From NCBI GenBank assembly GCA_002269645.1, contig NIVC01002491.1, positions 182,154 to 214,847 on the forward strand: a stretch of 32,694 nt of DNA. Reading direction: 5' to 3'. The translations under genes and the position numbers were made by a program. This DNA comes from Macrostomum lignano (taxonomy: Eukaryota). Below the pieces are notes generated by a model, which had not been told where the DNA came from, searched no databases, and saw only the letters and a program-made list of their open reading frames with translations. How positions within the stretch are numbered: position 1 is the first letter of the stretch; every line of letters starts with the position of its first letter. This document shows, one piece after another, positions 10,460 to 25,400 of this stretch.

Positions 10460-13400
10460 GTACTTTGTTATTTTGTTTCGAACTTGACGTTTTTCTTGTT
10501 TTATTGCAAGAATTACTTAGTTAGTTAGTTAGCTAGTTAGTAAGTTAGTTAGTTAGTTAGTTAGTTAGTTAGTTAGTTAGTTAGTTAGTTAGTTAGTTAG
10601 TTAGTTAGTTAGTTAGTTAGTTAGTTAGTTAGTTAGTTAGTTAGTTAGTTAGTTAGTTAGTTAGTTAGTTAGTTAGTTAGTTAGTTAGTTAGTTAGTTAG
10701 TTAGTTAGTTAGTTAGTTAGTTAGTTAGTTAGCTAGCTAGTTAGTTAGTAAATTAGTTAGTTAGTTAGTTAGTTAGTTAATCAGTCAGTTAATTAGTAAG
10801 TTAGCTAGTTAGTTAGTTAGTTAGCTAGTTAGTTAGTTAGTTAGTTAGTTAGTTAGTTAGTTAGTTAGTTAGTTAGTTAGTTAGTTAGTTGGTTAGTTAG
10901 TTAGTTAGTTAGTTAGTTAATCAGTCAGTTAGTTAGTAAGTTAGCTAGTTAGTTAATTAGTTAGTTAGTTAGTTAGTTGGTTAGTTAGTTAGTTAGTTAG
11001 TTAGTTAGTTAGTTAGTTAGTTAGTTAGTTAGTTAGTTAGTTAGTTAGTTAGTTAGTTAGTTAGTTAGTTAGTTAGTTAGTTAGTTAGTTAGTTAGTTAG
11101 TTAGTTAGTTAGTTAGTTAGTTAGTTAGTTAGTTAGTTAGTTAGTTAGTTAGTTGGTTAGTTAGTTAGTTAGTAAGTTAGTTAGTTAGTTAGTTAGTTAG
11201 TTAGTTAGTTAGTTAGTTAGTTAGTTAGTTAGTTAGTTAGTTAGTTAGTTAGTTAGTTAGTTAGTTAGTTAGTTAGTTAGTTAGTTAGTTAGCTAGCTAG
11301 CTAGCTAGTTAGTTAGTAAGTTAGTTAGTTAGTTAGTTAGTTAGTTAATCAGTCAGTTAGTTAGTAAGTTAGCTAGTTAGTTAGTTAGTTAGCTAGTCAG
11401 TTAGTTAGTTAGTTAGTTAGTTAGTTAGTTAGTTAGTTAGTTAGTTAGTTAGTTAGTTAGTTAGTTAGTTAGTTAGTTAGTTAGTTAGTTAGTTAGTTAG
11501 TTAGTTAGTTAGTTAGTTAGTTAGCTAGCTAGTTAGTTAGTAAATTAGTTAGTTAGTTAGTTAGTTAGTTAATCAGTCAGTTAGTTAGTAAGTTAGCTAG
11601 TTAGTTAGTTAGTTAGTTAGTTAGTTAGTTAGTTAGTTAGTTAGTTAGTTAGTTAGTTAGTTAGTTAGTTAGTTAGTTAGTTAGTTAGTTAGTTAGTTAA
11701 TCAGTCAGTTAGTTAGTAAGTTAGCTAGTTAGTTAGTTAGTTAGTTAGTTAGTTAGTTGGTTAGTTAGTTAGTTAGTTAGTTAGTTAGTTAGTTAGTTAG
11801 CTAGCTAGTTAGTTAGTAAGTTAGTTAGTTAGTTAGTTAGTTAATCAGTCAGTTAGTTAGTAAGTTAGCTAGTTAGTTAGTTAGTTAGTTAGTTAGTTAG
11901 TTAGTTAGTTAGTTAGTTAGTTAGTTAGTTAGTTAGTTAGTTAGTTAGTTAGTTAGTTAGTTAGTTAGTTAGTTAGTTAGTTAGTTAGTTAGTTAGTTAG
12001 TTAGTTAGTTAGTTAGTTAGTTAGTTAGTTAGTTAGTTAGTAAGTTAGTTAGTTAGTTAGTTAGTTAGTTAGTTAGTTAGTTAGTTAGTTAGTTAGTTAG
12101 TTAGTTAGTTAGTTAGTTAGTTAGTTCGTTAGTTAGTTAGTTAGTTAGTAAGTTAGTTAGTTAGTTAGTTAGTTAGTTAGTTAGTTAGTTAGTTAGTTAG
12201 TTAGTTAGTTAGTTAGTTAGTTAGTTAGTTAGTTAGTTATTTAGTTAGTTAGTTAGTTAGTTAGTTAGTTAGTTAGTTAGTTAGTTAGTTAGTTAGTTAG
12301 TTAGTTAGTTAGCTAGTTCGTTAGTTAGTTAGTTAGTTAGCTAGTTAGTTAGTTAGTTAGTTAGTTAGTTAGTTAGTTAGTTAGTTAGTTAGTTAGTTAG
12401 TTAGTTAGTTAGCTAGTTAGTTAGTTAGTTAGTTAGTTAGTTAGTTAGTTAGTTAGTTAGTTAGTTAGTTAGTTAGTTAGTTAGTTAGTTAGTTAGTTAG
12501 TTAGTTAGTTAGTTAGTTCGTTAGTTAGTTAGTTAGTTAGTTAGTTAGTTAGTTAGTTAGCTAGTTAGTTAGTTAGTTAGTTAGTTAGTTAGTTAGTTAG
12601 TTAGTTAGTTAGCCAGTTATTTAGGGTATAGCCAGCTAGAAAAACCGTGTTTTGCTTTTCAAAGCTCTTGTTGTCTAATAGGTAAAATCGCACAGGTGCT
12701 AGAAATCGAATGCAGATGAGCATCAAAAATTGAAATTGCTTAAATCCCCCAGGAATTTAACAAATCAGTAGCAATATTGTTGTCTGTCAGGAAAATTTTA
12801 ATACAAAGTTTATTTATAACCTCTACATGCTGGTCCATTGTTCGAATTCTAAAGCGAAAGGTGGACACGAACTCCCGTATATAAAGAAACAGCGATATTG
12901 TTCTCAGCAGAAGTCAACAACTCTCAGTTGCTATGCTGAGAGCTTCAAACGCTTCAAGAGTGAATTTGATTAATTTAAACCTTTAAGACTGATTGCTTTT
13001 CGCCATGGAAATTTTACAATCAGTGGAGATTTTGTCGCCACAATTAAGTAAATGCAACGCAACTCAAATACACAATTAACAGCAGGAAGACGTTGGCGCC
13101 GCTCTGAAGGCATTTGTTGACGGCTACCTCAGTGGCAGCAACAAGGCGCTGATGCTGGGCGCCAGCTTCTCGCAGCAGTCTCAGGTCATTGCTGAGCTGG
13201 CCCGCTACTACTGTGTGACTCAGGTGAGAGACTGTGACTAAACTGTGTGACTGAGGTGAGATACTGTGGCTAAACTGTGTGACTCAGGTGAGAGACTGTG
13301 ACTAAACTGTGTGACTCAGGTGAGAGACTGTGACTAAACTGTGTGACTCAGGTGAGAGACTGAGGCTAGACTGTGTGACTCAGGTGAGAGACTGTGGCTA

Positions 13401-22400: not shown

Positions 22401-25400
22401 ACTGTGTGACTCAGGTGGAGACTGTGACTAAACTGTGTGACTCAGGTGAGAGACTGAGGCTAGACTGTGTGACTCAGGTGAGAGACTGTGGCTAAACTGT
22501 GTGACTCAGGTGAGAGACTGTGACTCAACTGTGTGACTCAGGTGAGAGACTGTGACTAAACTGTGTGACTCAGGTGAGAGACTGTGACTCAACTGTGTGA
22601 CTCAGGTGAGAGACTGTGGCTAAACTGTGTGACTCAGGTGAGAGACTGTGGCTAAACTGTGTGACTCAGGTGAGAGACTGTGGCTAAACTGTGTGACTCA
22701 GGTGAGAGACTGAGGCTAGACTGTGTGACTCAGGTGAGAGACTGAGGCTAAACTGTGACTCAGGTGAGAGACTGTGGCTAAACTGTGTGACTCAGGTGAG
22801 AGACTGTGGCTAGACTGTGTGACTAAGGTGAGAGACTGAGGCTAAACTGTGTGACTCAGGTGAGAGAATGTGGCTAGACTGTGTGACTAAGGTGAGAGAC
22901 TGAGGCTAAACTGTGTGACTCAGGTTAGAGACTGAGGCTAAACTGTGTGACTCAGGTGAGAGACTGTGACTAAACTGTGTGACTCAGGTGGAGACTGTGA
23001 CTAAACTGTGTGACTCAGGTGAGAGACTGTGACTAAACTGTGTGACTCAGGTGAGAGACTGTGACTAAACTGTGTGACTCAGGTGAGAGACTGTGGCTAA
23101 ACTGTGTGACTCAGGAGAGAGACTGTGGCTAAACTGTGTGACTCAGGTGAGAGACTGAGGCTAGACTGTGTGACTCAGGTGAGAGACTGTGGCTAAACTG
23201 TGTGACTCAGGTGAGAGACTGTGACTCAACTGTGTGACTCAGGTGAGAGACTGTGACTAAACTGTGTGACTCAGGTGAGAGACTGTGACTCAACTGTGTG
23301 ACTCAGGTGAGAGACTGTGGCTAAACTGTGTGACTCAGGTGAGAGACTGTGACTAAACTGTGTGACTCAGGTGAGAGACTGTGGCTAAACTGTGTGACTC
23401 AGGTGAGAGACTGAGGCTAGACTGTGTGACTCAGGTGAGAGACTGAGGCTAAACTGTGACTCAGGTGAGAGACTGTGGCTAAACTGTGTGACTCAGGTGA
23501 GAGACTGTGGCTAAACTGTGTGACTCAGGTGAGAGACTGTGGCTAGACTGTGTGACTAAGGTGAGAGACTGAGGCTAAACTGTGTGACTCAGGTGAGAGA
23601 ATGTGGCTAGACTGTGTGACTAAGGTGAGAGACTGAGGCTAAACTGTGTGACTCAGGTTAGAGACTGAGGCTAAACTGTGTGACTCAGGTGAGAGACTGT
23701 GGCTAGACTGTGTGACTCAGGTGAGAGACTGTGGCTAAACTGTGTGACTCAGGTGAGAGACTGTGACTAAACTGTGTGACTCAGGTGAGAGACTGTGACT
23801 CAACTGTGTGACTCAGGTGAGAGACTGTGACTCAACTCTGTGACTCAGGTGAGAGACTGTGGCTAAACTGTGTGACTCAGGTGAGAGACTGTGGCTAAAC
23901 TGTGTGACTCAGGTGAGAGACTGTGGCTAAACTGTGTGACTCAGGTGAGAGACTGTGACTAAACTGTGTGACTCAGGTGAGAGACTGAGGCTAAACTGTG
24001 ACTCAGGTGAGAGACTGAGGCTAAACTGTGTGACTCAGGTGAGAGACTGTGGCTAAACTGTGTGACTCAGGTGAGAGACTGTGGCTAACTGTGGACTAAG
24101 GTGAGAGACTGAGGCTAAACTGTGTGACTCAGGTGAGAGAATGTGGCTAGACTGTGTGACTCAGGTGAGAGACTGAGGCTAAACTGTGTGACTCAGGTTA
24201 GAGACTGAGGCTAAACTGTGTGACTCAGGTGAGAGACTGTGACTAAACTGTGTGACTCAGGTGGTAGACTGTGGCTAAACTGTGTGACTCAGGTGAGAGA
24301 CTGTGACTAAACTGTGTGACTCAGGTGAGAGACTGTGACTAAACTGTGTGACTCAGGTGAGAGACTGTGGCTAAACTGTGTGACTCAGGAGAGAGACTGT
24401 GGCTAAACTGTGTGACTGAGGTGAGAGACTGAGGCTAAACTGTGTGACTCAGGAGAGAGACTGTGGCTAAACTGTGTGACTCAGGTGAGAGCCTGTGGCT
24501 AAACTGTGACTCAGGTGAGAGCCTGTGGCTAAACTGTGTGACTCAGGTGAGAGACTGTGGCTAAACTGTGTGACTCAGGTGAGAGACTGTGGCTAAACTG
24601 TGTGACTCAGGTGAGAGACTGTGGCTAAACTGTGTGACTTTGTTATGATTTAATTCCATAATTTTCAGATTGGCCTGAATCTGTCGCCGGAACTAAGCGA
24701 TCGGTCGATCTACCCGTACTACACGAGAATGTCCACTACTTTTAACGTCTATGTGAAACCGTTGGTGTCAATTGTGACCAAGTTCAATTGGAAGAAGATC
24801 GGCTTTCTAGTTCAAGACTACTCCGCATTCAAATCGGTGAGTAGATATGTGCGTCATCTGTGTCACACTTGTGCAACAGATGGTGTCACTGTGTGTGACT
24901 GTGAGTCACTGTGTGTCACTGTGTGTCACTAAATGTCACTTATGCAGTCAGTGCGCGATAAAAGAAGTTTTTTTGTTAAACGATTTCTTCCAGGTGGCCA
25001 GCGAGCTGGAGACAGATTTCATGGCCCGCAACATCAGCTATTCCAAACGGATGTACTTTACTGACGCCACTGCCGCCCTGACAAGCCTTCTGGTAAGTGA
25101 TAATTTCTCACGTCAATAATTTTTAACATAAACAATTTAAATTATAAAACTATCGCAGTGAGTTTACTTATTATGATTTGCAGCAAAAGGACATTCGAAT
25201 CTTCATCGCTGTTCGCTCGATCGCCGCTGAACAGTCGGATAAGCGGCTGGACTGCGTGGTAGGGCACCGAATCCACCCACACCCAAATCCAACCACACCC
25301 GAATCCACCCACACACGAATCCACCCACACCCGAATCCAACCACACCCGAATCCACCCACACCCAAATCCAACCACACCCGAATCCACCCACACCCAAAT

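Follow-up and report, generated by a model that had tools for sequence, protein, structure and literature searches.

Minisatellites that extend over an exon/intron boundary, and reiterate the donor found there, have been described in several human genes. They comprise a 37-bp unit present 5–9 times in intervening sequence (IVS) 7 of F7, a repeat with 25 pseudo-sites in intron 2 of IFI 6-16 and one with 15–20 in IVS13 of CBS (PMC1557585), as well as a 100-bp unit repeated 10–15 times in LMNB2 and an 81-bp unit repeated 16–18 times in intron 4 of PDGF (Borensztajn et al. 2006, PMC1557585). The upstream-most donor alone is used in F7, LMNB2 and PDGF, and the next two are used too in IFI 6-16 and CBS. 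Fifty F7 constructs demonstrated that the pseudo-sites are functional, but are outcompeted through a 5′→3′ scanning preference (PMC1557585). Here we describe a 32,694-nt stretch of the genome of the flatworm Macrostomum lignano (contig NIVC01002491.1, positions 182,154–214,847 of the forward strand; hereafter the window, with positions counted from its first base), in which intron 2 of a predicted class C G protein-coupled receptor (GPCR) gene consists almost completely of tandem copies of a 32-nt unit that spans the junction between exon 2 and its own donor. The locus is an extreme case of the class already described, and not a new splicing device. As the probable explanation we put forward that a young, hypervariable minisatellite has grown in a short, ancestral intron within an M. 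lignano class C GPCR family that was amplified recently, where the first donor is used and no function of the array needs to be invoked.

Tandem Repeats Finder called one single array at 13210–24639 on the forward strand (period 32, 359.3 copies, 95% matches, score 20221). When phased from the donor, the array resolved into 358 full units, 306 of which measure 32 nt, 35 measure 31 nt and 17 measure 30 nt, followed by a 29-nt partial unit. Each unit combines 14 exonic nt with the donor and 18 intronic nt, and it is flanked by an 11-nt direct repeat, ACTGTGTGACT. Intron 2 is 11,445 nt long, of which 11,416 nt (99.7%) belong to the array; the rest is a unique tail of 29 nt, and the acceptor therefore lies outside the array. 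The features of this region are the following.

13083–13223 (+): exon 2, 141 nt, phase 0/0; the unit begins with the 14 nt that close the exon, ACTGTGTGACTCAG (13210–13223).
13221–13229 (+): authentic 5′ splice site CAG|GTGAGA, with 13224 as the first intron base; gene models join VTQ to IGLN.
13210–24639 (+): 32-nt minisatellite, 358 full units plus the 29-nt partial unit, with higher-order blocks and ~350 reiterated pseudo-donors.
24611–24639 (+): last, partial unit, GTGAGAGACTGTGGCTAAACTGTGTGACT, which carries the pseudo-donor nearest to the acceptor.
24640–24668 (+): unique 29-nt intron tail, TTGTTATGATTTAATTCCATAATTTTCAG, with the sole authentic acceptor; the tail is identical in 13 paralogue/haplotig copies.
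24669–24836 (+): exon 3, 168 nt, phase 0/0.

Exon 2 ends with TAC TGT GTG ACT CAG, directly followed by GTGAGA. At the other end of the intron, the acceptor TAATTTTCAG is followed by ATTGGC, and its TTTTCAG at 24662–24668 is part of the unique sequence. The partial unit carries a CTAAAC 40–45 nt ahead of the true AG, where it could plausibly serve the real intron as branch site. The structural claim of a first-pass annotation of this DNA, namely that the intron is made of tandem copies of its own exon 2/donor junction, was thereby borne out. The accompanying statement that every junction reads CAG|GTGAGA went too far, as this holds for 315 of the 357 internal junctions (88%). Among the 358 full units, 350 start with GT (eight do not), 334 start with GTGAGA and 340 end with CAG. 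CTAAAC was found in 277 of them, 13 nt before CAG, and the combination of a GT start, a CAG end and CTAAAC in 252. Altogether, the full units represent 34 distinct sequences. The unit that had been quoted as the repeat, which bears GACTAA, is indeed present in 86 copies, but it is only the second most frequent one, behind GTGAGAGACTGTGGCTAAACTGTGTGACTCAG with 102 copies. Blocks of multiple units are duplicated within the array; for example, a run of 17 units appears again 58 units away.

The likeness to the F7 type is extensive. The first monomer lies over the exon/intron boundary (array start at 13210, exon end at 13223), the donor is reiterated, the copy number varies (here from 2 to 358 full units over 16 copies of the gene), a single acceptor is located downstream, and the upstream-most donor would give the mRNA, as gene models predict here. 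The two differ in scale, with 358 copies here against at most 25 and an array that takes up nearly the whole of an 11.4-kb intron, and also in their setting, since the flatworm host has default introns of ~85 nt, carries two such arrays in one gene and presents a graded family of 16 copies. A different comparison is offered by the gigantic introns of the Y-linked Drosophila genes kl-3 and kl-5 (Fingerhut et al. 2019, PMC6508621). There, too, an intron that is nearly all satellite is transcribed through and removed, but on a megabase scale, with simple satellites unrelated to the splice junction and with a dedicated expression programme.

In four independent UniProt gene models (A0A1I8JL75, A0A1I8J1R0, A0A1I8GUE8 and A0A1I8FPH6), the first donor is paired with the true acceptor. 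These models read ELARYYCVTQ|IGLN over arrays of 33–34 units, and of either 2 or 28–29 units. A search for a processed retrocopy carrying the joined exons found none, and an exact-protein look-up for transcript contigs returned nothing on record. Read-through into the array, or the use of a later donor, would give VTQ-VRDCD-stop (GTG AGA GAC TGT GAC TAA). Because the added 32n nt carry this in-frame TAA, products of later donors would be nonsense transcripts rather than a variant protein. On the strength of the gene models and of the human analogy, the fallback of the first-pass annotation, by which the array is junk and tolerated since no donor but the first is used, appears to be the best-supported reading, and it matches what was reported for human boundary-spanning minisatellites (PMC1557585).

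The history of the array could be followed in other copies of the gene. Exon 2 was found 16 times at 95–100% identity, on contigs C2491, C3174, C2422, C4050, C2303, C2302 and C2002. These 16 copies are tandem paralogues together with haplotig/homeologue copies, and any given pair may be allelic or paralogous. The array starts at the identical exon base in 16/16 copies, and it ends at the identical ACTGTGTGACT|TTGTTATG junction in the 13 copies with an A/B-type exon 3. The number of full units per A/B copy amounts to 2 (three identical contigs), 28, 29, 38, 41, 62, 68, 104, 250, 250 and 358. In the smallest arrays, two full units and a partial one, the intron measures 122 nt, and an A/B intron with one donor copy would measure 58 nt. 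Flanks of 360 nt that differ at 0–5 positions (0–1.4%) accompany arrays of 107 to 11,430 nt, and between copies with flanks 0–1% apart the array length differs up to ten-fold. The arrays are alike in their first and last few units and reshuffled inside. As judged from these sequences, the shared edges, the reshuffled interior and the duplicated blocks represent the signature of unequal exchange, and the series as a whole points to a single origin followed by very rapid changes in length, as expected of a hypervariable minisatellite subject to slippage and unequal exchange.

A third type of copy was found at C2303:42300–46000, C2302:74500–78400 and C2002:185000–189000 (loci L023–L025; the gene of A0A1I8JL75). 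Its array of 33–34 units breaks off after GTGAGAGACTGCGGCT, in another phase, and continues into a different tail of 44 nt. Compared with the window, exon 3 of these copies shows ~51% protein identity and exon 2 shows 98% DNA identity. Since exon 3 is divergent while exon 2 is nearly identical, this suggests that exon 2 and the array moved between paralogues by gene conversion. The insertion of a dispersed, genome-wide satellite into the intron was considered and rejected: among the 32-mer matches listed, all were on the gene-copy contigs C4050, C3174, C2422, C2303, C2302 and C2002, and all 32-mer arrays examined on those contigs were located at the same exon 2 junction.

The intron itself is older than the repeat. 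A paralogue with 78% identity in exon 2, present on five contigs (L026–L030), has an intron at the identical codon boundary (YYYLPQ|IGYS) and in the same phase. This intron opens with CCTCAG|GTGAGC, consists of 192 nt of unique, non-repetitive sequence without a trace of the 32-mer, and closes with CATCCAG|ATCGGG. Because this paralogue carries a unique intron at the same site, intron 2 is ancestral and predates the repeat. The exon end that falls within the repeat encodes YYCVTQ, as against YYYLPQ in the paralogue without an array. A PQ in this place is the usual motif of class C receptors, and homogenisation with the array may have rewritten the final codons of exon 2.

These observations also bear on the link, drawn in the first-pass annotation, to intron gain by duplication of a segment containing AGGT (Hellsten et al. 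2011, PMC3265369; Ma et al. 2016, PMC4974935). That model and the present locus have in common a tandem duplication encompassing AG|GT. Here, however, the intron was pre-existing and its acceptor did not come from a duplicate. The intron is not missing from relatives without the duplication, as the paralogue with 78% identity possesses it, and the acceptor at 24662–24668 is situated in unique sequence outside the array rather than in a duplicate following the one with the donor. Creation of the intron by duplication was ruled out by the unique intron at the same site, with the same position and phase, in the paralogue.

In the explanation that we favour, a seed unit would by chance have straddled the exon 2/intron 2 boundary, between the 11-nt direct repeats described above; repeats of this sort would lend themselves to the initiation of slippage. 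The unit would subsequently have been amplified in the direction of the intron, from 2–3 copies to hundreds, through replication slippage, unequal exchange and gene conversion. By analogy with the human genes and in line with the gene models, splicing would join the upstream-most donor (13224) to the one acceptor (24668), and the ~350 downstream copies of the donor would behave as silent pseudo-sites that are removed with the lariat. Tolerance of the array would follow from its growth on the intron side only, with a nonsense transcript, as can be read directly from the sequence, whenever a later donor is taken. The same process would inflate most introns of the gene, in a genome of which 15% is simple and tandem repeat.

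Since the unit has AG|GT at its junctions, recursive splicing has to be weighed as an alternative. In this scenario, CAG|GTGAGA would act as a dual 3′/5′ site in a ratchet-like or stochastic stepwise process, in which blocks of at least two units are removed; each step would restore exon2|GTGAGA, so that any order of steps would yield the correct mRNA. The unit features reported in the first-pass annotation were confirmed and fit this idea, as the units carry AG|GT, a consensus 5′ splice site and the branch-like CTAAAC 13 nt before CAG. A pyrimidine tract is absent, the tract TGTGTGACTC being pyrimidine-poor, and the same is true of some acceptors of the host gene. The true acceptors of this gene include GTTAAACGATTTCTTCCAG, GCGCTAACAAACACAG and CAACAACTGCAG, in which the branch-like motifs lie just as close and the pyrimidine tracts are weak. 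The two acceptors that had been quoted for reference are present as stated (GCGCTAACAAACACAG at 26428–26443 and TTTACTAAATCTTTCAG at 1950–1966), and the 3′ end of the unit is within local norms, because several true acceptors are equally poor in pyrimidines and have close CTAAC or TTAAAC motifs. The introns of the host gene without arrays measure 80, 87 and 91 nt. Two to three units (64–96 nt) correspond to this normal size, but a single unit of 32 nt is far below any intron seen in the gene, so that only blocks of at least two units are plausibly excisable. Furthermore, no stable RNA structure that would mask the array or loop it out was detected; a stretch of the array RNA folds no better than shuffled sequences (z = +2.2), and the sites should therefore be accessible. 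Rfam families were not found in the window either.

To describe variation within the unit, we compared 1,076 32-nt units drawn from 11 arrays. Unit positions 1 and 2 (the donor G and T) are changed in 0.8% and 2.2% of the units, respectively, and positions 3–5 (donor +3 to +5) in 0.7–2.0%. The branch-like A's at positions 17–19 are changed in 3–6% and the C of CAG at position 30 in 4.6%. Variation is lowest over positions 21–27 (TGTGTGA), with changes in 0–0.8%. Thus, in these 1,076 units from 11 arrays no extra constraint on splice motifs was detected, and the GT, AG and branch-like positions are kept no better than others. The copy number is likewise unconstrained, ranging from two full units and a partial one to 358, and the downstream sites are silent in the boundary-spanning minisatellites that have been studied experimentally (PMC1557585).

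Known zero-nucleotide recursive splice sites, or ratchet points, of Drosophila and vertebrates (PMC8605326, PMC5126111) resemble the array in that a juxtaposed CAG|GTGAGA, as found at 88% of the junctions, would restore a 5′ splice site. AG|GT is indeed present here, but conservation of the site is not: ratchet points are single conserved sites with strong, long pyrimidine tracts in very long introns, as opposed to hundreds of unconserved copies at a spacing of 32 nt. Another precedent is provided by the dual-specific AGGT sites in tandem repeats that are spliced in human UBC and VCX3A (PMC10809524). In the same study, 77 human introns were found to have a length that is a multiple of the surrounding repeat, and such expansions were argued to be tolerated because splicing is able to remove them (Duan et al. 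2024, PMC10809524). The unit with AG|GT, the expansions that are in principle spliceable and the fast evolution of repeat number are shared with the present array. In UBC and VCX3A, however, both of the used splice sites lie within a repeat of coding units (multiples of 3), whereas here a non-coding unit of 32 nt brings an in-frame stop, and the annotated acceptor is located beyond the end of the array. An intron of the UBC/VCX3A type was rejected for intron 2, as its 11,445 nt are not a whole multiple of the unit and its acceptor is not part of the repeat. On balance, stepwise recursive splicing of the array appears unlikely. The proposal of the first-pass annotation that the array is a recursive-splicing ladder or a field of decoy sites did not find support, since splice positions are as variable as the rest, the copy number ranges from 2 to 358 and the gene models use the first donor.

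Minisatellite growth in this gene is not limited to intron 2. Each intron of more than 100 nt contains a tandem array, and array-free introns number three. The arrays comprise (TTAG)528, the 32-mer, a 10-mer, a 15-mer repeated 73 times, 8/16/32-mers, an 18-mer, a 24-mer repeated 20 times, a 56-mer and a 12/36-mer. Intron size in the host gene is set almost entirely by minisatellite growth. The following arrays are of particular relevance.

30725–31436 (+): second donor-spanning minisatellite, 56 nt × 12.7, in intron 11; it starts 19 nt inside exon 11 (CAAGAGACTGTCTGAGCAG|GTAACAGG).
10513–12624 (+): (TTAG)528 array, which fills intron 1.
25267–26390 (+): 15-nt × 73.5 array, which fills intron 5; it starts 8 nt past the donor (GTAGGG at 25259) and contains no donor copy.

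The 56-nt array reiterates the donor of exon 11 (GAGCAG followed by GTAACAGG). It has the same junction in 16/16 gene copies, with ~9–55 units, and the gene models read KRLSEQ|DMISDG across it. Outside the gene, ~3–5 minisatellites were found in each of five random 10-kb stretches of the genome. As a genome-wide proxy for donor-bearing arrays, we counted places in the whole assembly where three copies of an octamer lie 12–42 nt apart, with the reversed motif as control, and single octamers were counted too. The counts were as follows.

CAGGTGAG: 31,022 periodic, 2,149 for the reversed control, 89,042 single copies.
CAGGTAAG: 2,854 periodic, 1,583 for the reversed control.
CAGGTGGG, a non-donor variant: 10,250 periodic, 1,148 for the reversed control.
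CAGCTGAG, a non-donor variant: 9,385 periodic, 8 for the reversed control, 67,287 single copies.

Taken at face value, the reversed control suggests a 14-fold enrichment of periodic CAGGTGAG. Over their own controls, the non-donor CAGGTGGG and CAGCTGAG are enriched ~9-fold and more than 1000-fold, respectively, and because these variants are also far above their reversed counterparts the reversed motif is a poor null. Relative to the single count, the periodic count is 35% for CAGGTGAG and 14% for CAGCTGAG. The M. lignano genome is thus very rich in donor-bearing minisatellites, but the donor-specific excess is only ~3-fold, and the minisatellites of this species have a strong CAG-N-TGAG-like composition. 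One further array was inspected, in an intron of a myosin motor-domain gene (L052, C1 ~375,900–376,460, minus strand), where a 24-nt unit repeated 24 times carries CAGGTGAG in each unit on the sense strand. This array was rejected as a boundary-spanning one, as it starts 45 nt past the real donor (CTCG|GTGAGC); its end lies 22 nt short of the acceptor. Separately, the list of octamer matches contained a 38-nt tandem unit, GTGAGATGATGATTATT[CG]AGT[AG]GGATGATGATTTTCAG, at C6:396167–396668. This unit resembles a complete mini-intron, with TTTTCAG|GTGAGA junctions that fit the ratchet-point consensus.

Conceivably, the reiterated donors could have a regulatory role, as a decoy or U1-binding field. 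They would titrate U1 or misdirect splicing, leading to a tunable down-regulation coupled to nonsense-mediated decay; in a variant of this idea, they would shield the long intron from premature 3′-end processing, and the copy number would set expression among the paralogues. Such a role would be in keeping with the in-frame TAA that comes with any downstream donor, with the very different copy numbers of otherwise near-identical paralogues, and with the ~3 times higher frequency of CAGGTGAG in periodic arrays compared with close non-donor variants. However, most arrays in the gene and in the random samples are without a donor, the donor positions inside the array are not conserved, and the abundance of non-donor variants in arrays (~10,000 matches each) implies that most of the 14-fold enrichment is a composition effect. 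We consider a regulatory field of this kind highly improbable. A broader version of the recursive idea, in which donor-capturing minisatellites are a recurrent and favoured route of intron growth in M. lignano and are cleared by unit-wise recursive splicing, is unlikely as well. It could draw on the ~31,000 periodic CAGGTGAG matches, a count equal to a third of all copies of this octamer in the assembly and ~3 times that of the non-donor variants; if it were true, such arrays would be natural ladders with hundreds of dual-specific splice sites.

Several points weigh against our explanation of a tolerated minisatellite with a single used donor. The gene models are not reads but were predicted on an earlier assembly, and none of them is of the 358-unit copy in the window. 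In a flatworm with default introns of only 80–90 nt, the scanning rule known from mammals may not hold; such short introns hint at intron definition, in which case competition might come from the donor nearest to the acceptor. In periodic arrays, the donor octamer CAGGTGAG is ~3-fold commoner than the non-donor CAGCTGAG and CAGGTGGG, which leaves room for a bias favouring donor-bearing arrays. The exact copy number of the 8–11 kb arrays is uncertain, coming as it does from a PacBio/Canu assembly of 2017. Finally, the window copy of the gene has two differences in C homopolymers that are unique to it. In exon 11, at ~30711, it reads TCACAGCC, a 1-nt deletion, where 12/15 other copies read TCACCAGCC and 3/15 read TCCCCAGCC; in exon 12, at ~31569, it reads GGGCCCTC, with a 1-nt insertion in a C run relative to its relatives. 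Together, the −1 and +1 changes put ~40 codons out of frame and give rise to a stop. The copy with the largest array may thus be a pseudogene; alternatively, the indels may be PacBio consensus errors.

This leads to the possibility of an artefact or a dead gene, in which the 358-unit array would either have been over-expanded during assembly or reside in a pseudogene that needs no splicing. The Mlig_3_7 assembly (764 Mb in 5,270 scaffolds, PacBio/Canu, 15% simple and tandem repeats) is highly redundant owing to the DV1 karyotype, and 64% of its bases are error-free according to REAPR (PMC5730564). In agreement with such concerns, contigs C3174 and C4050 carry apparently the same gene copy with 250 units, and the indels in exons 11 and 12 would suit a dead gene. 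Against this, eleven independently assembled arrays of 28–358 full units show the same start and the same patterns of edge units with different interiors, which argues that the repeat and its position at the boundary are real. A pure assembly artefact was accordingly ruled out for the existence and position of the array, its exact length excepted. Moreover, the window copy is undamaged in all its remaining exons, which keep their phase, and the two indels both lie in C runs and compensate each other, as consensus errors would. An artefact or a dead gene is, in our view, a very unlikely explanation.

On the explanation that the array is a tolerated minisatellite, the locus catches intron growth midway. 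At one ancestral intron it presents a graded series from 122 nt (two full units and a partial one) to 11.4 kb (358 units), over which the divergence by point mutation is close to nil. With ~350 sequence-identical competing donors and one acceptor, it is also a far more extreme natural test of the rule that the most upstream donor wins than F7 with its 5–9 copies, and its host is an animal whose default introns are short and for which public RNA-seq data and working transgenesis exist. For annotation, the locus holds a warning: arrays with perfect donors are common, so that splice-site predictors and gene models are misled, and several UniProt models translate intronic repeats.

The host gene was modelled with 13 exons and 12 introns at 10226–32486 on the forward strand, using Pfam, M. 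lignano proteins of 70–88% identity, a tblastn exon map and a splice-site model. In addition to exons 2 and 3, listed above, its exons are as follows.

10226–10459 (+): exon 1.
24994–25092 (+): exon 4.
25184–25258 (+): exon 5.
26444–26632 (+): exon 6.
27271–27513 (+): exon 7.
29375–29438 (+): exon 8.
29519–29596 (+): exon 9.
30155–30534 (+): exon 10.
30622–30743 (+): exon 11.
31492–31828 (+): exon 12.
32355–32486 (+): exon 13.

The spliced product gave an ANF_receptor match (E = 2e-27) that is continuous over the exon 2/3 joint and a 7tm_3 match (E = 2.8e-40) in Pfam. Because the former is N-terminal and the latter C-terminal, the host is assigned as a class C, GABA-B/mGlu-like GPCR gene. Its closest database proteins, at 62–88% identity, are from Macrostomum lignano without exception. 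Among the UniProt models of this family, A0A1I8F352 and A0A1I8FPH6 translate intronic minisatellites, for example MSRCHDVKMSRCQ from the 8/16-nt array at 27042–27198.

Three further features were recorded in the window.

1897–2454 (+): exon with a CAP-Gly domain (E = 1.2e-12); the acceptor TTTACTAAATCTTTCAG at 1950–1966 precedes it, and arrays lie upstream at 136–380 and 1024–1277.
6809–8248 (+): 479-aa open frame with matches to Phage_integrase (E = 1.8e-9) and DUF3504 (E = 8.7e-8).
28350–29015 (−): 221-aa open frame within intron 7, with a weak winged helix-turn-helix match (HTH_29, E = 7e-4, below the Pfam cut-off).

The 479-aa frame, located between the CAP-Gly gene and the GPCR gene, represents a tyrosine recombinase of a Crypton-like element or a domesticated copy of one, and the 221-aa frame in intron 7 may be a transposase remnant.

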